From NCBI GenBank assembly GCA_021613535.1, contig CP075494.1:13764001-13828000 (forward strand): a DNA stretch of 64,000 bases, read 5' to 3'. Under the pieces are notes generated by a model. It worked only from the letters and a program-made list of their open reading frames with translations. It did no database searches and was not told where the DNA came from. This document shows, one piece after another, positions 29,004 to 48,310 of this stretch. The number at the start of each line of letters is the position of its first letter. Position 1 is the stretch's first letter. A program made the position numbers and the translations under genes. This stretch comes from Adineta vaga (taxonomy: Eukaryota; Animalia; Rotifera).

Positions 29004-30590
29004 TCAAATCCAAATAGCACACTGTCGATCTGAACATCGGATTCTTGCTTTCTTCAAATAATTTGTTTGAAGTAACCAACCAGATAATAGATTCGATGAT
29101 TTATTTGGATTTTCTAATGAAATATTTAAATAAATCAAAGATTTTTCATGAAAAATTTCCAATAAAAGTAAGATTAATGAATCAAATTCATCTCGATTTT
29201 TCACTGAACATAATAGTCGTTTGATATTTGCAAGTAATTGTGCATTATTATCCAATAATTCAAATAAAAATCGAGTACAAGCAATATTCAATATTAACAT
29301 TTCAATCGATGCAGGAATTTGTACAATAAGTTTATCAAAAAAATCTCGACAAGTACTTGAAAGAGAAGTAAAACGAAGTTCTAATATTCGAAGAGAAGAA
29401 TTCATCATTAATGTATTCACAAATGAGAGAAGATCATGACTAATAGACGAAGCAATAATTGTTAATGTTTTGACATTTCTATACATACATTTGGATGATA
29501 TTTGTAATAATTTTTCGACAGTATGATTTGGTATTGTTAGATGTAAATGATTAACACGATTAAAATCATTTCGATTGAATAAATTATCATTATAATTAAT
29601 CATGGAATTGATTCGATAGATTTCATCGATGAATGGTAATGAAAATAGATGATAACCATTCGTATCATCAATTGTCTGACAATGAATTCGTTGTTTATAC
29701 CAATGAAAATTTGAAATTAAATCTTCGATTAGAAATGCTTCAGATGTTTGATGAACAATAAGATTCAATTGAAGATTATCCGTATAAGTATAAATTGAAG
29801 ACCAATGTTCACCAAATAAATATCGATCAAAACAATGTACTTCATGTTCAGTATTACTAAATGATATGGTTAAATTTTTCAAATTTTTAATCATCATAAT
29901 CAATCGTTTGAATTCATTAAATAGAACGGAACGTAAAATAAGTTTTAAAGAAGTTAATGACGACGGAAAATTTACTAAATGAGGAATAGATGTACTTTGA
30001 TTCAATGTTAATGTAAGTGAATGAAGATTAGGAACGAATGTATTTAATTGTAAAAGATCATCAGTTGTACAATGATCTAATCGAAGATGAATTATTTGTG
30101 AATGAGAATTAGGAAGAAAAGTTAGTGTTGGTAAATGACAATGAATTAAATGAGGAAAATGAGGAAGTGAATGACGAGGTATCGATCGCCATACAGGGGA
30201 TTCAATAGAAAGAGAAGTTAAATGTGGATATTTATGTACAAGTTTTTCGATCATTGTTCGATCAGCATCAAGAAGTGTGAGTGATCGAAGATGAATGAGC
30301 TGACTAGGTGGAAGATATGAAATTAAAAATGGTATAAAATCAATTGAATAACGACTCGAAAGACGTATTGAATGAATATTTAATGAACGAAGTTGATTGA
30401 GAATATGAATTAATTGAGTTTTACTCAATGGATGAGTAGAAAAATCAATATGAAGATAGTCTATCATTCGAATAAGTGATGTAAATCGATAATTAAGACG
30501 ATAAAATGAATAAATAAGATTAAGTGAAGATAAATAATTAAAGATAAAAAGTAGTATTTCATTAGGAAGATCTTCAAAGATGGATGGCAT
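29004..30590 (-). CDS. Intronless F-box domain protein with degenerate leucine-rich repeats (lineage-expanded type)
   Basis: 528-aa single ORF. N-terminal FEDLPNEILLFIFNYLSSLNLIYSFYRLNYRF F-box, followed by LxxLxL repeats. Confidence 0.8.
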   Translation of the reverse strand: MPSIFEDLPNEILLFIFNYLSSLNLIYSFYRLNYRFTSLIRMIDYLHIDFSTHPLSKTQLIHILNQLRSLNIHSIRLSSRYSIDFIPFLISYLPPSQLIHLRSLTLLDADRTMIEKLVHKYPHLTSLSIESPVWRSIPRHSLPHFPHLIHCHLPTLTFLPNSHSQIIHLRLDHCTTDDLLQLNTFVPNLHSLTLTLNQSTSIPHLVNFPSSLTSLKLILRSVLFNEFKRLIMMIKNLKNLTISFSNTEHEVHCFDRYLFGEHWSSIYTYTDNLQLNLIVHQTSEAFLIEDLISNFHWYKQRIHCQTIDDTNGYHLFSLPFIDEIYRINSMINYNDNLFNRNDFNRVNHLHLTIPNHTVEKLLQISSKCMYRNVKTLTIIASSISHDLLSFVNTLMMNSSLRILELRFTSLSSTCRDFFDKLIVQIPASIEMLILNIACTRFLFELLDNNAQLLANIKRLLCSVKNRDEFDSLILLLLEIFHEKSLIYLNISLENPNKSSNLLSGWLLQTNYLKKARIRCSDRQCAIWI

Positions 30591-31272
30591 TGTTAAGACA
30601 CAAGAAACGAAAATATCTGACTGTTTGTTTGCTTGTTTAGATTGTCCACAGCGTAGACGTAGAGTTCAATATTTCTCCTTCCTTCTTTCGTTCGTTCGTT
30701 CGCTATTCAATCAATATATATTGGAGGAGAATAGGCTATTCGTTGACGAAAAAGAACAACAGATGCCGTAGGATGGTAGTCACATGTTTAGAATATTCAT
30801 GTTGACTATGCAATGCAGAAAAGAACATTATCGAAAACGTTTCGTGATAAGAAACTCAAATTCATTTTAACTGTATTGATATAAATTCAGTATGAATAAG
30901 TATAAAGTAAACTGAGAGATGAGACATTGACTAGAAAGTCATCTAATGTCAATATTTAATTTCATATTCATCCTGAAATGTATATGCAACGATCATTCAT
31001 AATAGAATAAAGATAACTTAGACGGTCTTTTTTTCGTTTTGTATTGGTAATAAACTGCATCACAAACCCTGAAAAACAACTGTTATATTTAGTTGTTGTT
31101 TTTTTCTATAAGATAAGAGAAAAATAAAACAGGTGCTGTAAATAAGCTTTTATTGGATACGCTGAATCAACCTTCTTTTTGCTTCGAATCGTATATAAGT
31201 CATTGATTCTTTACTCATTTTCCATTATCGTTAACATTCATATTCATTTTGATAATTCAATACAAGACAAAA

Positions 31273-31587
31273 ATGAGCTATAATTCACCATATAACCAAC
31301 AAAAACCATCGGTACTTTCTGCATTTGTCGGTTCCTGCCCACCACCTCCTGGAAATCAGTCATTCGATGGATCATGCCCTCCACCACCACCATCATCGGA
31401 TGGATACTGCCCACCGCCTCCATCATCGGTAGGATATTGTCCACCACCACCGTCATCAGATGGATACTGTCCTCCACCACCATCATCAGGTGGATACTGT
31501 CCTCCACCACCATCATCAAGTGGATACTGCCCACCACCACCATCTCATCATCATCATGGTCATCACGGTCATCATGGTCACAATTAA
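31273..31587 (+). CDS. Small Cys/Pro-rich repeat protein 1 (seven G[YS]CPPPP units, His-rich tail), function unknown
   Basis: Single exon of 104 aa. ATG in AAAATG context, TATA box near 31192 and AATAAA near 31656. The 30-bp repeats vary mostly at synonymous or spacer positions. Ends HHHHGHHGHHGHN. Confidence 0.8.
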   Translation: MSYNSPYNQQKPSVLSAFVGSCPPPPGNQSFDGSCPPPPPSSDGYCPPPPSSVGYCPPPPSSDGYCPPPPSSGGYCPPPPSSSGYCPPPPSHHHHGHHGHHGHN

Positions 31588-32098
31588 CAATCCTTTTGTA
31601 CTTTCTAATCAAGACAGATCAAAACCTTCTATAAAATGTTTTTTACTACGTACATAAATAAATAAATATATAAATAAAGCAATTATGATGTTTTTTCTAA
31701 ACATTCTATTTGACTATCTGTCACACTATTGATATACAACCGTGTTTCATTCTTACTCCGTTGATATTTAGAGAGGAAAATATCAACACTTGTTTGAATT
31801 CTGTTGTTATATATGCTTACTTTTAACAAAATCATTATAGTCGTTGTGTTCTTATCTAGTGCTCCGTCACAAGTGACGCACAATCTCGAAATGAGTGTTC
31901 TGTTGCTCAGTATTTTATCATAGCACGTAACAGAATCAAATAAAACTTGACTCAAAAACTTGCGTATCTATGAAATTACTTTGTAGAAATATTATATATA
32001 TATATGTGTATTCTTTTGTTTCTTTCAGTATCACAATTGCCATTAGTTTCAATTTAACATATTCTCCTCTAATTTGTGCATATATTAATTGAACAAAA

Positions 32099-32431
32099 AT
32101 GGGTCAAGAATGTTGTTATCCTTCTCGTTACCCTTATCAACCCAATCAGTATGTATCTGGCGGTGGTTATTGCCCACCACCTCCATCTCATTTTCCACAT
32201 CGTCAACCTTATTTTCCATCAGGTGGCGCAGGTTATTGTCCACCTCCACCCGGTGCAGGTTATTGTCCACCACCTCCTGATATGGGAGGCTATTGTCCAC
32301 CACCTCCCGACATGGGAGGTTACTGTCCACCACCTCCCGACATGGGAGGTTACTGTCCACCACCTCCCGACATGGGAGGTTACTGTCCACCACCTCCCGA
32401 CATGGGAGGTTATTGTCCACCACCGGAATGA
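32099..32431 (+). CDS. Small Cys/Pro-rich repeat protein 2 (eight GYCPPP units, five preceded by DMG), function unknown
   Basis: Single exon of 110 aa. ATG in AAAATG context, a TA-rich box near 31993 and AATAAA near 32502. N-terminus MGQECC. Near-perfect 30-bp repeats at 32279-32428. Confidence 0.8.
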   Translation: MGQECCYPSRYPYQPNQYVSGGGYCPPPPSHFPHRQPYFPSGGAGYCPPPPGAGYCPPPPDMGGYCPPPPDMGGYCPPPPDMGGYCPPPPDMGGYCPPPPDMGGYCPPPE

Positions 32432-32958
32432 TTATCAAACATCGAAATTATTTAAATGTTGTTAATTATTTATCTTCATTATATATAAATACTATTTTTT
32501 AAATAAAATAATTCAATCAAATCGAGTTTATATTGCTATTCTTTATATAGTTGTATAATAGTAAATAAATATCAAAAGATTCTTCTTTCAAATGCATCTT
32601 TAATATGGCTTCTTGCTTATTATTAGTCATATTTTGAATATCAAATCAAATTACTATAGAAGATAGCTTCTCGTTTAGTGAAGAGCATGCGTTTCAAATC
32701 AAATCCTTTGTTTTTCTCTTTATACGGCTATTCTTTGTTTCTTCACTTTTATTTCTTTCTCCTTTGCATACGACATATACGTCCTACAACAATAAAAATA
32801 AGCTCGACAAACAAACCTAACGACTGATAAAGTGCGAACGACAAGTGAAAGAAAACAACACGCAATAAACCTCGAAATATTAACATATCTATTAAAATAG
32901 TAGAAGAAGAAGAAAATCATACAACATATTTCAAAAATCTGTTTTTTTGTCAACAAAA

Positions 32959-34529
32959 ATGTCTACTAACTCTGCACTTACTCAACTGATCGAAGATAAA
33001 GCCAAATCTGAATCAGTTCATACTTGTTTACCATCTTATGATCGTAATCAACTCAAACATGGCATTGTTCATTTAAGTGTAGGCAATTTCCATCGATCGC
33101 ATTTAGCTTACTATATGGATGTATTAGCAAATGAACATGGACAAACGGATTGGGGTATTATAGGTGTTGGAGTTCGTTCATTTGATAAACCAATGAGTAC
33201 AGTTTTAAAAGAACAAAATGGTTTATATACATTAGTAACTAAAGGTACTGATGAAAAAGATGTTAATGTTCGTATTATTGGTTCATTGATTCGTTATATA
33301 TTTGCACCGGATGAGCCTGAAAATGCTTTGGCTGTACTTGTACATCCTGATACAAAAATTGTGTCGATGACTATTACAGAAAGTGGTTATGATTTAGATA
33401 TGAATAATCCTGATGTTCAACATGATTTAAAAACTTCTGATAAACCAAAAACAGCATTTGGTTTCATTGTTCATGGATTAGATGCTCGTCGTCGTGCTAA
33501 TGAAAAGCCATTTACAGTAATGTCATGTGATAATGTTCAACAGAATGGTGAAGTAACAAAGAAATGTATTCTTCAATTTGCTAAAGGTTTAAATAATCCA
33601 GAATTAGTTGAATATATCGAAAGAAACGTAACTTTTCCAAATGCAATGGGTAAGAAGAAAACTGAATAGATCATAATGACTTGTCTTTGTTTCTTTGAAT
33701 TTCAGTTGATCGAATTACACCAGCTACGACTGATGCTGATCGTGAATATGTTCGTAAGCATTGTGGTATCGCTGATGGTTGGCCGGTTGTCACTGAACCA
33801 TTTATTCAATGGGTTATTGAAGATACATTTTGTAATGGTCGACCACCACTTGAGTTACTTTCATCATCAACTTATAATGTTCTTCTTACTGAACATGTTG
33901 AAGCATATGAATGTATGAAAATGCGTCTCCTAAATGCATCACACACCGGTATGTGTTATATTGGTTATCTTATGGGTTATAATTACATTCATGAAATCAT
34001 GCTCGATAAACAAATTGAAATTTATATTGAAGATTTAATGAATCATGAAGTAACACCAACTTTACCACCTGTACCTGGTATTGATCTTGAAAAATATAAA
34101 CGGACACTTGTCGAACGATTTTCTAATCCACATATAAAAGATACAGCATTGAGAGTATGTATGGATGGTGCATCGAAATTTCCAAAATTTCTTGTTCCAA
34201 CTATAGTTGAACAATTAAAACGTGGAAATAATCCACATTTTTGTGCATTAGCTGTAGGTGCTTGGATACGTTATTTAGGTGGTGTTGATGAACATGATAA
34301 ACCAATAACATTACAAGATGCATTAGCTGTTGACCTTAAATTAGGTGAATTAGCGACGAAAACAAAACCAAGTGCCAAAGCAATTCTTAGTGTATCTCAA
34401 GTATTTGCTAATTTAGCTGAAAATCAACAATTTGCTGATGCCGTAGAACGTGTTGTCGAACTTTTATATACTGTTGGCTCAAAAGAAACACTCAAACAAT
34501 GGGTTAATGAAGCACCAAAGAGAAAATAG
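32959..34529 (+). CDS. Mannitol 2-dehydrogenase (long-chain polyol dehydrogenase family), candidate horizontally acquired gene
   Basis: GIVHLSVGNFHRSHLAYY, IVSMTITESGY, FTVMSCDNVQQNG, FPNAMVDRITP, WPVVTEPFIQWVIED, YECMKMRLLNASH and ERFSNPHIKD. One GT-AG intron at 33650-33705. Confidence 0.93.
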
Positions 34530-43305: not shown

Positions 43306-44490
43306 TCGGATTCTAATGAATACAAATATGAAATACTTTTTAATTTCTCCTATAAATAAATAAACTAATTACTTTCTTTGTTCATTTCATATATTATTAA
43401 ACACTTCTTGTTGAGATTTCCAGATAGGATGCATGTTAATTTTCCACTATTATCTCAAACATATCAATGGAATACTATTTATTTACATTTTCCAATGATT
43501 TCTAACATTTAGTAACATAGGAAAAATAGAGAAACATTGTTTTAAAATTTTATGGTGATTATGAATCAAACTTCTAATTTTAAGTTATTGATGAAAGGAC
43601 GATGTATTTATAGTTGTTCAATGATACATGTCTAGTTTTTTAAGAATTTTTAAAGTATATTTTTCTTCCATAGAAACAGAAAGACAAAGTAACAAAATGT
43701 TATTTTTCTTCTTTTGTTTTGTCCTTATTTATTATTATAAACGTGCCTACAACCCATTTCTTTCTCTTCGCAAACGCGCATATAAGATCGCTAATGTTCA
43801 TTACGTCAATTTTACCTTCGCATTCATATATCATATTTAAAGAAAGGTTTCCTTTGTGAAAAAAAAGAATGCTTTGAAACTTAGGTTGTTTTTTTTAAAG
43901 TTATTGAATAGAAAAAATAACTTCTCTTCGATATTTCAATCGCTCATATGGTTACGTAAATAGACAAGAAAAATATGTATGACAATTTGAAGAAGAAATT
44001 GATCTGTTCTTTTTTCTCATTTTATTTTTATATTCATATTTTAAGAATACATGATGAGAGTATTTTGTACCAGTCTGTAGATATCACATAAAGTTTGTCA
44101 TCAATGAAAAAAAAAACTTTTGATCAACATGCGTGTCCGCTTTTTTTCCTTTTCTCTCACCCTTTTTTTTTATGTATATGTATGATATTTATCATTAGGA
44201 AGAAAAGAGAAGATATTAAATCAACGACGTTCGATATGGACCATATGCTATGCAATCGTGAACAGAAGAAAAAGGTAAGCGTAAAACATGTCCTTTTATG
44301 TATATCTAAATAGAAAAAACAACAGAAATCTCGTCGATAAAATGACGTCAAAAAACATTGATGCTTACTTTTTGTATTATATCATACTATTAGTTTTTCT
44401 CTTCTTCTAGATGTTTCTATAAACAAAATAAAAAGCATTGATTTCATACGATGAGAAATTGATCATTTACAGACATAATAGCAAGTGAAA

Positions 44491-47400
44491 ATGGGTAATT
44501 TTCTTGTGGTTCCAACCTTTCGTCGTAAAATCAAACGTTCAAAAGTGAATATTGATCCGTCATCTATAGAATTACAATCAACAACAGCACAACATAAAGA
44601 TTATCATGTTTATTATGATGCTTCACCAGTGACAGATTCATCGTTGTGGATTAATATAAAAAATCGACGAAAACATGGATCACAATCGAATCGAATTCGA
44701 ACGACACGTTATAATATTTTAACATTTTTACCAAAGAATATTTTCGAACAATTTCATCGTATAGCTAATATTTATTTCGCAATATTAATTGGTCTCAATT
44801 GGGTACCTGTGATTAATGCTATTTCTAAAACTGTAAATCTTCTTTCTTCAAAAATCATCTTTCTGTATATATATATATATATATATATGTCGTTTTCATT
44901 CAGGTTGCTTTTATTCCATTGACTGTAATTTTAACTATAACTGCTGTCAAAGATCTCGTCGAAGATTTAAAACGATGGAGAAGTGATGTACATATCAATA
45001 ATCAAATGAGTGAAGTTTATGATAAGTAATTGCTTTTGTACTACTAATTTCATATATGATTAAATACATTTTCTCTCGTACATAGAACATCTCGAACATT
45101 TGTACAATGTAAATGGCAAGATTTATCTGTTGGAGATATTATTCGTGTACATGTTGGTCAAATAGTTCCAGCTGATATTCTTTTATTATCATCAGCATCA
45201 TCTGAAAATACTTGTTATTTAGATACAGCTGCTATTGATGGTGAAACAAATTTAAAACAAAAAAGTATTCCATCATGTTTTTTAAATTTATCACAACCGG
45301 AAGGCACAAGTTTTGAATTACAATGTGATCCACCTACAGATGATATTTATCATTTTCATGGAAGAATTGTATTTTCATCCGACACTGATATCTATCCATG
45401 TGATAATAATAATGTTCTGCTACGTGGATGTGTATTACGAATTACAGATTATATTGATGGATTGATCATATATGCTGGTAAGTAACTTTTGATGTTTGAT
45501 TTGATTTATGCTAACAAAATAAAACTAACTTAGGTAATGAAACAAAAGTTATTAAATCATCGAAGATTGCTTCGAGTAAACATGCACTTATTGAACGATA
45601 TATTAATCGTGATGTACTATTTTCAAGTTTAATATTAATCTTCTTATGTTTACTTGGTGCTGGTCTATCATTACGTTGGGAACGTTCATTTGGACATAAA
45701 CGATTATTCGTACCGTTTGTAATAGATCATCCATTTAGTGAACCAGCTGGTCATTTCTTTGCATCGGCATTACGTTTTATGATTCTATTTCAAGTTCTAG
45801 TTCCCATTGCATTGTATGTATCATTGGATATCGTTCGTGTTTTACAAATGTATAGAATTGCACGAGATAAAAATATGAAATATGAACATCCGATTAGTTG
45901 TCGAACATTTACAATTAATGAAGATCTTGGACAAATTGGTTATGTGTTTTCCGATAAAACAGGAACAATAACACAAAATAAACTTGTTTTCAAAGCTGTC
46001 TCTATTGGTGGTTTACACTATTCGAATCGGTAAACACACACACACATTTTTATCGCCTCTATGATACCGTTTCTTTTTCAGTTCTGATTTACCCGTGAAT
46101 AAAGATCAAACTATGCATCATTTTCTAACAACATTAGCAATATGTAATACCTCGTTTATTGTTCATGAACATCGTGAATTAATGTCTCATATTGATTATC
46201 AACCGAAATATGAAGGTGATAATGCTGATGATCTTGTACTTTGTCAAGCAGCGTCTGACTTTGGTGTTCGAATGTTATCACGTTCCGCACAATCTATTGT
46301 TGTTCGATCTATTAATTTAACAGATACAGAAAAAGAAGATATTGAATATGAAATTTTATGTTTAATACCATTTGATTCAAGTCGAAAACGAATGTCAATT
46401 GTTGTTCGCCGAGAAAATCGAATCTATTTGTATATTAAAGGTGCAGAAACGTCAATATGGTCAAATTTAAGTAGTTCAAATGATGAAGATATCAAATTAA
46501 CAACTGAACAACATAGTCTAGGTTTTGCTGAACAAGGATATCGTTCTTTATTAGTTGCATATCGAGAAATATCAATCGATGAATTCGAACCATGGTTTGA
46601 ACGGTATCGATATGCAGCGAATTCATTAGATAATCGTGAAGAAGCTATTTCTGAAGTAGCAACTACTATTGAACATAGTTTAATCCTAGCAGGATTAACA
46701 GCTGTCGAAGATAAATTACAAGAAGGTGTACCAAGAACAATAGCAACATTACGATGTGCTGGTATCAAAGTTTGGCTTTTGACAGGAGATAAACAAGCAA
46801 CAGCTTTGAGTACAGCACAAGCAGCATCATTGGTCAATATACCACGAACAGGACATTCAGATCATATTACATTAACTGAAGTAAATGTCGAATTATTTTC
46901 ATTTGAATAGATGTTGTTTTTTCTACGAAAGTGAATACTTTTAGAGCAATGTTCCGATAATGACTACCTGGGATTTTGATGAAACAACACAAGCACATTT
47001 AAATCGACATACTCATATGATATATTATAGTTCACAATTAATTGAAATAGATCAACAATTGAGTACGTTGAATTCATTGTTTCAAACTTTTCCGTGCAAA
47101 CAATTATTTCTGTTTAGATACTCGAGATGGAGGAATATCGAATGAGACACGTACGAATGCAACTATCGCTCGAATGAGTGAAGTTATTGCTGCACAAACA
47201 CTACCTGTCTGTCTCGTAGTAACAGGTGATGATTTAGGTATTATTTTACAATATGGATCAAAGGAATTTATTCACGTAGCTGCACAATGTCAATCAGTTC
47301 TGTTTTGTCGTGTATCTGCTACACAAAAACGTGAATTAGTAACACTAGCAAAGTCTGTTTTTAAACAGCGAATTCTAGCTATTGGTGATGGTGCCAATGA

Positions 47401-48310
47401 TGTTGGAATGATTCGTGAATCTCATTGTGGTATAGCTGTTTTCGGTCGTGAAGGTTCTCAAGCAGTTGCTGCCGGTGATTTTGCAGTGGATCGTTTTGAA
47501 TGCCTTCGTCATCTGTTACTCGTTCATGGTGCATGGTGTTTTACACGTACAAGTGATTTAATTCTATATACATTTATGCATAATTGTCAATATGTACTCG
47601 TAATATTTTATCATCAAATCTTTAATGGATATTCCGGAGCTGTTTCTATTCATTCATTTTGTAAGTTATTTCGAGAACAGATTTTTAAAATAAACTTTAT
47701 TTTTTTAGATATTATTCTATACACAAGTTTATTTACTGTTCTTCCTCAAGTAAGTTTTCATAAAAGAGAAATATTCAATTTCATGTTTCATATTTAGTGT
47801 GCTGCTGCATTATTTGATCAACATGTTCCAGCTGAACGAGCTCTACGTGAACCACAACTTTATCAATATACTCTACATGGTAAACCATATCGTATGTCAT
47901 CATATTGGTTAAATATGGTCGATGCTGTTTGGCAAAGTACAATTATCTTTTTTATTTCATATTATTCCTATCGACATCAATCAGATATCGATCGATTATC
48001 ATTTGGTTTTTCTCTTGTATTCAGTATGATTGTGACTTCTTTACTACATGTTATCTTACAAACTTCACGCATTGATTGGTCAGTAGTAGGCTCCACAATA
48101 TTAAGTTTTCTAGTATTTCTTGGTTTTACACTTGTTATCGATGCAACCTGTGTTAAATGTATTCCAGGTGAAAGTCCATACAATGTTTCTTATCGAACAT
48201 TTCGTCAAGGACCATTTTGGTTTACAAATATTTTGATTGTTATTACAGCAATGCTACCACGTTTTGCATTTAAATGTATTTATAATACAATACGTCGACC
48301 TCTCAATTGA
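44491..48310 (+). CDS. P4-type ATPase (phospholipid flippase, ATP10-like)
   Basis: [99 protein letters not shown] and [11 protein letters not shown]. Confidence 0.92.

Follow-up and report, generated by a model that had tools for sequence, protein, structure and literature searches.

Two adjacent genes in a 64,000-nucleotide stretch of DNA from Adineta vaga, a bdelloid rotifer (assembly GCA_021613535.1, contig CP075494.1, positions 13,764,001 to 13,828,000 of the forward strand; hereafter the window, numbered from its first letter) encode small proteins, W1 and W2, which are built from tandem units of a Gly-Tyr-Cys-Pro-Pro-Pro-Pro (G-Y-C-P-P-P-P) heptapeptide. The explanation that we favour, to which a probability of about 0.4 is given, is that this lineage-restricted, disordered pair consists of a lipid-anchored (gene 2) and a soluble (gene 1) multivalent motif array at the cytosolic face of membranes. 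What speaks for it is the strict seven-residue core with its free spacers, the reuse of this core in unrelated proteins, the predicted anchor of gene 2 and the disorder of the chain. The window DNA is AT-rich (about 31% G+C) and belongs to contig 5 of six in the assembled genome. The two genes, and the two segments of them that matter most below, are as follows.

31273-31587 (including the stop codon), forward strand: gene 1 (W1), an intronless coding sequence for 104 residues with seven C-P-P-P-P units and a C-terminal His/Gly tail.

31551-31584, forward strand: the His-rich tail of gene 1, H4-G-H2-G-H2-G-H-N, recognised by Tandem Repeats Finder (TRF) as a period-9 array.

32099-32431 (including the stop codon), forward strand: gene 2 (W2), an intronless coding sequence for 110 residues with a Y/P/Q-rich head and eight G-Y-C-P-P-P-P units.

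32099-32116, forward strand: the codons for M-G-Q-E-C-C of gene 2, a predicted signal for N-myristoylation (Gly2) and S-palmitoylation (Cys5, Cys6).

The two single-exon open reading frames (ORFs) had been placed at these positions by a first-pass annotation made from the letters alone, and both were confirmed. That annotation counted seven and eight copies of an essentially invariant core, and the numbers of units are right. In W1, five of the seven units read G-Y-C-P-P-P-P and units 1 and 2 read G-S-C, and W2 has seven full units and an eighth, the last, which closes as C-P-P-P-E. The spacers are specific to each gene (SSD, SSV, SSG or SSS in W1; DMG or GA in W2), and the core is written with different codons, GGA TAC/TAT in W1 and GGT/GGC TAY ... 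CCT CCC in W2, as had been described. At the DNA level, TRF reports a 30-nt array at 31380-31544 of W1 (5.5 copies, 85% matches), another at 32230-32424 of W2 (6.6 copies, 91% matches) and a 9-nt array of His codons at 31551-31580 of W1. When the G-Y-C-P-P-P-P pattern was back-translated and searched in the 100.8-Mb genome, it gave 19 matches at three loci only, 12 of them within W1 and W2, against 0 for the reversed control; the heptapeptide motif is far beyond chance. Three identical 21-mers occur among the units of W2, and some of the identity between units of the same gene stems from recent amplification of DNA, so it is by comparing genes with each other, and species with each other, that selection on the peptide has to be argued. 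In these comparisons the earlier claim that the peptide rather than the DNA repeat is conserved is borne out; inside a single gene it needs to be qualified.

The composition of the two proteins is restricted. Cysteine makes up about 9% of the residues, with 10 in the 110 residues of W2 and 7 in the 104 of W1, or about one per 9-10 residues. Every family member has 0-1 lysine, and W2 has 4 glutamines. No dibasic site was found in W1, W2 and the family members, and no signal peptide or conserved hydrophobic N-terminal stretch in W1, W2 and their orthologues, in line with the first-pass annotation. The near-lack of lysine in W1, W2 and their relatives would make ubiquitination hard, and may simply follow from the restricted composition. 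AlphaFold2, run with the family alignment of gene 2, gave a mean predicted local distance difference test score (pLDDT) of 41.6 and no secondary structure, which is the expected outcome for a disordered, polyproline-rich chain.

Exact-protein look-ups for W1 and W2 returned either nothing or metagenomic DNA contigs only, with no transcripts, so that the case for the two genes is a comparative one. A 2.17-Mb contig in ENA (L020, ctg355622) carries a RabGAP-TBC gene, an F-box-like gene, the pair and a mannitol dehydrogenase gene in the matching order, and a scan of JGI metagenomes gave eight further AT-rich, rotifer-like loci with the tandem pair. The starts and stops of the ORFs are conserved in at least six other lineages. 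The ratio of nonsynonymous to synonymous substitution rates (dN/dS) is 0.07-0.32 for gene-2 pairs, at a dS of 0.6-2, and 0.2-0.65 for gene-1 pairs; these values are approximate on repeats, and the protein-guided alignment biases them somewhat downward. When gene 2 is aligned by nucleotides only, the differences peak at codon position 3 and all the gaps are multiples of 3; the heptapeptide itself is written by 46 distinct 21-mers. On such comparative evidence, W1 and W2 are to be regarded as real genes under purifying selection.

It might be imagined instead that the two ORFs are non-functional open frames made by a tandem repeat of proline codons. All six frames are open across the repeats, the look-ups gave no transcripts, and the gene-2 orthologue on L020 (L020:5165-5175) carries a 1-bp deletion in its third unit. 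We consider this explanation very improbable, because the start, the stop, the N-terminal hexapeptide and the promoter elements are kept across at least seven lineages and across the genome duplication, and because dN/dS is well below 1 with a peak of differences at the third position and indels that are all multiples of 3. The other open frames are by-products of the repeat. As for the orthologue on L020, the deletion lies in a contig of 13x coverage and is followed by five intact units, in phase with one another in the shifted frame, down to the usual stop; the assembly is in error here, or else the lesion is very recent.

Contig 2 carries another such pair, at about 3,676,600-3,677,800, in which an MSYN-type gene is followed by an MGQE-type gene, so that order and orientation are as in the window. 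According to tblastn with the ORFs of the window, contig 2 at 3.650-3.686 Mb is collinear, in inverted orientation, with the window at 22.7-51.8 kb, and the second pair sits at the expected place, between the RabGAP gene and a ribosomal-protein gene. Chromosomes 2 and 5 are homoeologues in Adineta vaga (PMC8494291). Given this homoeology and the collinear contig-2 pair, the pair is older than the bdelloid paleotetraploidy, and it is only from such a pre-duplication origin that we infer a taxonomic breadth beyond Adineta-like bdelloids. Tetraploidy was reportedly, in the account of Hur et al. from 2009, established before the bdelloid families diverged. The homoeologous region and related species were the two places to which the first-pass annotation had pointed for a conserved core, and the core is present in both.

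The anatomy of the family is clearest in gene 2. All nine orthologues start with M-G-Q-[ED]-C-C, followed by a Y/P/Q-rich head of 20-50 residues and then 5-11 G-[YF]-C-P-P-P-P units with D-M, D-S or G-G as spacers, and most of them terminate exactly at the last proline run. Throughout the gene-2 family, Cys stands before 60 of 60 PPPP runs, Tyr or Phe at position -2 in 60 of 60 and Gly at -3 in 56 of 60, while Asp follows 41 of the 60 runs. Met is often found 3-4 residues ahead of the Cys, both in the gene-2 orthologues and in the galectin linkers described below. Degenerate units, in which C is replaced by Y, F, T or A, persist in the family. The gene-1 relatives share a conserved M-x-[FL]-N-P start and 2-5 G-x-C-P-P-P-P units, and the contig-2 copy and orthologues of gene 1 retain both these units and the His-rich block. 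Every gene-1 orthologue has such a block, with 16-24 His, and so has the contig-2 copy of gene 2, where six units are bordered by His-rich blocks on both sides.

The N-terminal hexapeptide of gene 2 is invariant while the following 30 residues drift, and it may be regarded as the best single clue to function. Read against the PROSITE N-myristoylation pattern G-{EDRKHPFYW}-x(2)-[STAGCN]-{P}, applied by reading the sequences, both G-Q-[ED]-C-C-[YGTF] of the nine orthologues and G-Q-E-H-S-Y of the contig-2 copy fit. A second, palmitoyl signal, that is a Cys within the first ~6 residues, is offered by Cys5 and Cys6, which do not vary among the contig-5-type orthologues. Myristoylated N-termini of comparable appearance are those of calcineurin B (MGNEAS) and M-PMV Gag (MGQELS), and in Src-family kinases and LAMTOR1 (MGCC) Met-Gly with a nearby Cys forms the classical myristoyl-plus-palmitoyl signal. 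Because the MGQ[ED]CC hexapeptide is invariant and fits the acylation signal, gene 2 is predicted, very probably correctly, to be tethered to the cytosolic leaflet of a membrane. C-terminal prenylation was considered and rejected, since the Cys lies 4-5 residues from the end and not in a CaaX box.

The motif is also carried by other proteins. A profile word-search retrieved proteins (P0128-P0135) in which C-terminal galectin-domain strands are followed by 3-6 units of ~15 residues containing D-M-G-Y-C-P-P-P-P-D-S. In the genome itself, a tandem-repeat galectin with two motif units between its two galectin domains is encoded at contig 2:14171500-14173600 (L054; L067:2860-3700, minus strand). 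Its downstream exon (L067:3072-3371) matches Pfam Gal-bind_lectin with 85.8 bits, and the upstream ends of P0135 and P0128 also match, above the gathering score. Overall, the galectin carriers have 2-6 motif copies adjoining carbohydrate-recognition domains, and in their linkers the coupling of Cys and an aromatic residue to PPPP is the same as in gene 2 (28/28).

The second kind of carrier is a 95-residue, two-exon protein of the BRI3 family at contig 4:14228337-14228680 (L006:1444-1599, 1657-1788). Exon 1, with C-P-A-C at its end, contains P-P-P-Y as well as two G-Y-C-P-P-P-P units; exon 2 (L006:1657-1785) matches Pfam BRI3 (PF10164) with 50.4 bits and an E-value of 3.6e-13. The two-exon structure was drawn by eye, and the exons were searched separately rather than as a spliced protein. 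A LITAF-like identity of this protein was rejected, as the second exon matches Pfam BRI3 instead. Three BRI3 paralogues (L075-L077) lack the motif, and two of the three have P-P-T-Y in the same tail. W1 and W2 themselves have neither a Gal-bind_lectin nor a BRI3 domain. The remaining [YF]-C-P-P-P-P sites of the genome occur singly and resemble polyproline tracts that were extended by chance. Judged by these sequences, the motif serves as a module in no fewer than three unrelated settings, all of them cytosolic and predicted to be membrane-associated. Mammalian tandem-repeat galectins and BRI3 act at endolysosomal membranes. The conserved MGQ[ED]CC start, the His-rich block as a family trait and these other carriers all go beyond what the first-pass annotation had noticed.

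A further gene with proline tetrads was seen at contig 6:11110370-11111760 (L041:409-1799). It is a signal-less, multi-exon gene with Gly-rich ends of the G-F-G-G type and a Cys/Pro core with nine M-C-C-P-P-P-P heptads among its sequence, and it has no Pfam match. Its composition is loricrin/KAP/SPRR-like, and it may itself be regarded as a candidate gene of the integument.

Searches for known relatives of the pair were made at several levels. Pfam gave nothing above noise for W1, W2, both contig-2 copies and two orthologues, and the PDB sequences and the ESM Atlas held no match for the family. Single-protein word searches with W2 retrieved only the syntenic orthologue P0001, and those with W1 retrieved nothing. 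An exhaustive profile search with a gene-2 alignment of seven sequences (A1) against 1.84 billion proteins produced 127 matches at E <= 1e-3, of which on inspection only P0001 has both MGQDCC and Y-C-P-P-P-P; the others were rejected as homologues, being unrelated periodic P/G/Y repeats. A full-text literature search on the C-P-P-P-P string did not find a protein family of that kind. Metallothionein was rejected as an identity, since 15-30% Cys in C-x-C, C-C or C-x-x-C clusters would be expected, and the proteins show a single C-C and neither C-x-C nor C-x-x-C clusters. In a check against heme-regulatory motifs, every unit has the Cys-Pro, but it is followed by three more prolines and not by the usual hydrophobic residue. 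As far as these sequence searches reach, and as the first-pass annotation had suspected, the pair appears to lie outside every described family. As a kind of protein, disordered, proline-rich motif arrays with a lipid anchor are known; what is new is the motif, the His-rich partner and the spread to a galectin linker.

Each gene has its own TA-rich box and polyadenylation signal, as the first-pass annotation had stated, and alignment with orthologous promoters adds further elements.

31111-31116, forward strand: GATA-type site AGATAA upstream of gene 1, of putative function; [AT]GATAA aligns in five of seven gene-1 promoters (window, L020, L047, L051 and contig-2 copy).

31162-31171, forward strand: CTGAATCAAC, a promoter element of gene 1 that lies ~20 nt upstream of its TATA box; it lines up in the orthologous promoters and is conserved there for the most part.

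31192-31199, forward strand: TATA box TATATAAG of gene 1, 74 nt upstream of the ATG; TATATAA[AG] is present in 6/6 promoters other than that of the contig-2 copy.

31657-31678, forward strand: three overlapping AATAAA signals of gene 1, 70-90 nt past the stop codon.

31948-31954, forward strand: AP-1/TRE-type basic leucine zipper (bZIP) site TGACTCA upstream of gene 2, of putative function; TGA[CG]TCA is at the aligned position in 7/7 orthologous promoters.

31993-32004, forward strand: TA run or TATA element of gene 2, which aligns with the conserved ATATATA of orthologues.

32502-32507, forward strand: AATAAA signal of gene 2, 71 nt past the stop codon.

Gene-2 promoters have the bZIP-type site first and then the TATA element; the heptamer itself has 4 occurrences in the whole 64-kb window. 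The promoter of the contig-2 copy of gene 2 (L004:1000-1100, minus strand) contains TGACGCA, ACGTCA, an inverted TGACT...AGTCA and a TA run. Because this promoter has bZIP-type sites too, bZIP-type control may be ancestral to both gene-2 copies.

How could such a pair work? In the explanation that we favour, gene 2 would probably be N-myristoylated at Gly2 and S-palmitoylated at Cys5 and Cys6 and so be held at the cytosolic leaflet, where it would display its 6-11 motif copies on stiff polyproline segments. Gene 1 would be the non-anchored partner, with the same motif and with a His-rich block as a possible sensor of metal or pH. The motif would be a modular docking or thiol-modification site, either read by some partner or self-pairing, because the identical motif recurs with the same acidic and Met flanks in the galectin linker and in the cytosolic N-terminal tail of the BRI3-family protein. 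The miniproteins might then serve as sub-membrane scaffolds or clustering hubs, or might compete for the partner that recognises the motif. The parts of this picture that we infer are the lipidation, the location at a membrane, the docking by multivalent arrays and an endolysosomal link. A bolder version, which we consider doubtful, takes G-[YF]-C-P-P-P-P as a bdelloid-specific short linear motif or Cys-modification site with a dedicated reader or enzyme, and the anchored miniprotein as a hub that gathers the galectin, the BRI3-type protein and the His-rich partner on the membrane.

Bdelloid rotifers survive drying, radiation and membrane stress, and their syncytial skin rests on an intracellular lamina. 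If the hub version were true, the pair would represent a new membrane-surveillance or armouring module, possibly tied to desiccation survival, or the membrane attachment layer of the syndermatan intracytoplasmic lamina. The gene pair gives a concrete handle on sub-membrane organisation in bdelloids, and the motif offers a clean test case for how unrelated proteins come to share a new short linear motif; should it be only a compositional quirk of disordered tails, an orphan gene family remains.

Several observations weigh against the lipid-anchored docking array. The contig-2 copy of gene 2 starts with MGQEHS (His5, Ser6), so that the two N-terminal Cys are missing. When the consensus sequences of proline-recognition domains of the EVH1, WW, SH3 and GYF kinds ([FWYL]-P-x-phi-P, P-P-x-Y, +xxPxxP or PxxPx+, and P-P-G-phi) were checked by reading, the repeat unit matched none of them. 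EVH1 and WW ligands were rejected on this ground, as EVH1 needs a Pro directly after the aromatic residue and WW needs PPxY; a single P-P-x-Y does occur in each contig-2 copy and another in the tail of the BRI3-family protein. The motif unit does not have the basic residue on which canonical SH3 ligands depend. The nearest pattern is the aromatic-x-P-P-P of p41, a ligand of the Abl SH3 domain with Y-S-P5 (PMC1853097, PMC1356089), and it is matched only partially, since the number of prolines is four in most units. Simple docking does not account for the invariant Cys or for the His-rich blocks, which suggest thiol or metal chemistry, and the small size, the tandem genes and the promoters with TATA and AP-1 elements are also typical of bulk structural or stress proteins. 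The look-ups without transcripts count on the same side.

Among the alternatives, a cross-linked sub-membrane layer, one of the two readings that the first-pass annotation had offered, comes nearest, and it is possible, though less probable than the docking array. In a setting such as the syndermatan intracytoplasmic lamina, gene 2 would be lipid-pinned to the inner apical membrane, and intermolecular disulfide or oxidative links through Cys, perhaps through Tyr, together with metal bridges from the His blocks, would make a tough sheet with a function like that of vertebrate SPRR, LCE or keratin-associated proteins. Small signal-less proteins with short repeats rich in Cys, Pro and Tyr, encoded by tandem genes, would suit such a material, and the predicted anchor suits a layer against the plasma membrane; the TATA, AP-1-type and GATA-type promoter elements resemble those of epidermal barrier genes, and His-rich blocks occur in metal-hardened biomaterials. 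The contig-6 gene, with its M-C-C-P-P-P-P heptads and loricrin/KAP-like composition, agrees with a layer of this kind as well. The chemistry and the distribution of the motif fit less well. Transglutaminase-type linking is unlikely because there is almost no lysine (0-1 per protein), which makes the proteins poor amine donors, and the Cys density is only about 9%. There is no homology to the SPRR, LCE and KAP families of Pfam, the exact motif is an odd thing for a bulk material to share with a galectin linker and a BRI3 tail, and a literature search on the intracytoplasmic lamina did not find its molecular composition.

A metal or heme buffer or chaperone would make direct use of the residues that docking leaves aside: the M-G-(G)-Y-C units and His blocks would bind Cu(I), Zn(II) or Ni(II), or the Cys-Pro pairs would be heme-regulatory motifs, with gene 2 holding the ligand at the membrane. 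The invariant Cys followed by Pro in every unit, the frequent Met 3-4 residues before it, the 16-24 His of the gene-1 orthologues and the contig-2 gene-2 copy, and bZIP-type promoter sites compatible with stress or metal induction are all consistent with this, and Cys-Pro with a nearby His or Tyr is generally known to bind ferric heme. We nevertheless consider it improbable, as the content and spacing of Cys are far from the metallothionein type, the residue after Cys-Pro is not the hydrophobic one usual in heme-regulatory motifs, the run of four prolines after each Cys is left unexplained, and the idea has no obvious rationale in a galectin linker or a BRI3 tail. Far less probable still is the precursor of ribosomally synthesised and post-translationally modified peptides (RiPPs) that the first-pass annotation had offered, from which 9-10-residue units would be excised and modified. 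It would account for the tandem near-identical cores, and an Asx-specific endopeptidase might in principle make use of the Asp that comes after 41 of the 60 runs of proline in the gene-2 family. However, gene 1 has Ser spacers and few Asp or Asn, neither protein has a signal peptide, leader, follower or dibasic site, the conserved neighbourhood holds no tailoring enzyme, protease or transporter, gene 2 bears a lipid-anchor signal, degenerate units persist, and both a galectin and a BRI3-family protein have the motif built into them. That the function lies outside all of these readings is a little less likely than the cross-linked layer and distinctly more so than a metal or heme role.

Compared with known systems, the pair shows partial likenesses in several directions. 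SPRR, LCE and keratin-associated proteins are, like W1 and W2, small, signal-less and intracellular, with Cys/Pro-rich short tandem repeats, tandem genes and AP-1-type promoter sites, and the plasma membrane's inner face is where they assemble. Unlike them, W1 and W2 show no homology and no Gln/Lys-rich ends and have another repeat unit, gene 2 has a predicted anchor, and the motif is also found in a galectin and a BRI3-family protein. The start of gene 2, Met-Gly with a nearby Cys, resembles the SH4 heads of the Src family, LAMTOR1/p18 and RNF11, the last of which continues into a disordered Pro-rich segment at endomembranes. These dual-acylated adaptors go on into folded or helical domains, whereas gene 2 is a motif array throughout, and the likeness, seen by motif reading, concerns the anchor only.

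The repeats themselves have other parallels. The N-terminal tails of galectin-3 and of BRI3/LITAF, annexins A7 and A11 and the scramblases have disordered P/G/Y repeats of 9-10 residues without a signal peptide, which act in self-association or as short linear motifs; in contrast to these, the pair has an invariant Cys before the proline run, a strict seven-residue core and a stand-alone array. Formin FH1 regions, the F-P-P-P-P repeats of ActA and zyxin and the Abl-SH3 ligands consist, like the pair, of tandem units of an aromatic residue and polyproline with acidic flanks, and they recruit several copies of a reader domain; the pair differs from them by the Cys between the aromatic residue and the prolines, by mostly four prolines and by the lack of a basic residue. 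Plant extensins (Ser-Pro4 with Tyr cross-link motifs) also alternate X-P-P-P-P periodically with Tyr, but they are secreted, hydroxylated and glycosylated, whereas W1 and W2 have no signal peptide and carry Cys in place of Ser. RiPP precursors (ustiloxin-type, cyclotides, orbitides) likewise hold many near-identical short cores in a small protein; different from these, the pair has no signal peptide, recognition or dibasic sites or nearby tailoring genes, and it has a lipid-anchor signal and a motif that is shared with ordinary proteins.

The neighbours of the pair in the window are a RabGAP-TBC gene, an F-box-like gene, a mannitol dehydrogenase gene and a WD40 gene, and the contig-2 block keeps only the RabGAP side of this neighbourhood. 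The mannitol dehydrogenase gene (Pfam Mannitol_dh and Mannitol_dh_C; 32947-34529, forward strand) lies directly downstream of the pair. The syntenic relatives have it and the collinear contig-2 block does not, so it may have been acquired horizontally and inserted after the genome duplication. The F-box-like gene is an intronless ORF of 528 residues at 29004-30590 on the reverse strand, with a weak F-box-like start; it lies upstream of the pair in relatives as well (522 and 508 residues) and is absent from the contig-2 block. Further along the window, a single gene cluster at 44482-48307 corresponds to two tandem copies at contig 2:3655286-3666323, which points either to local duplication on contig 2 or to loss on contig 5.

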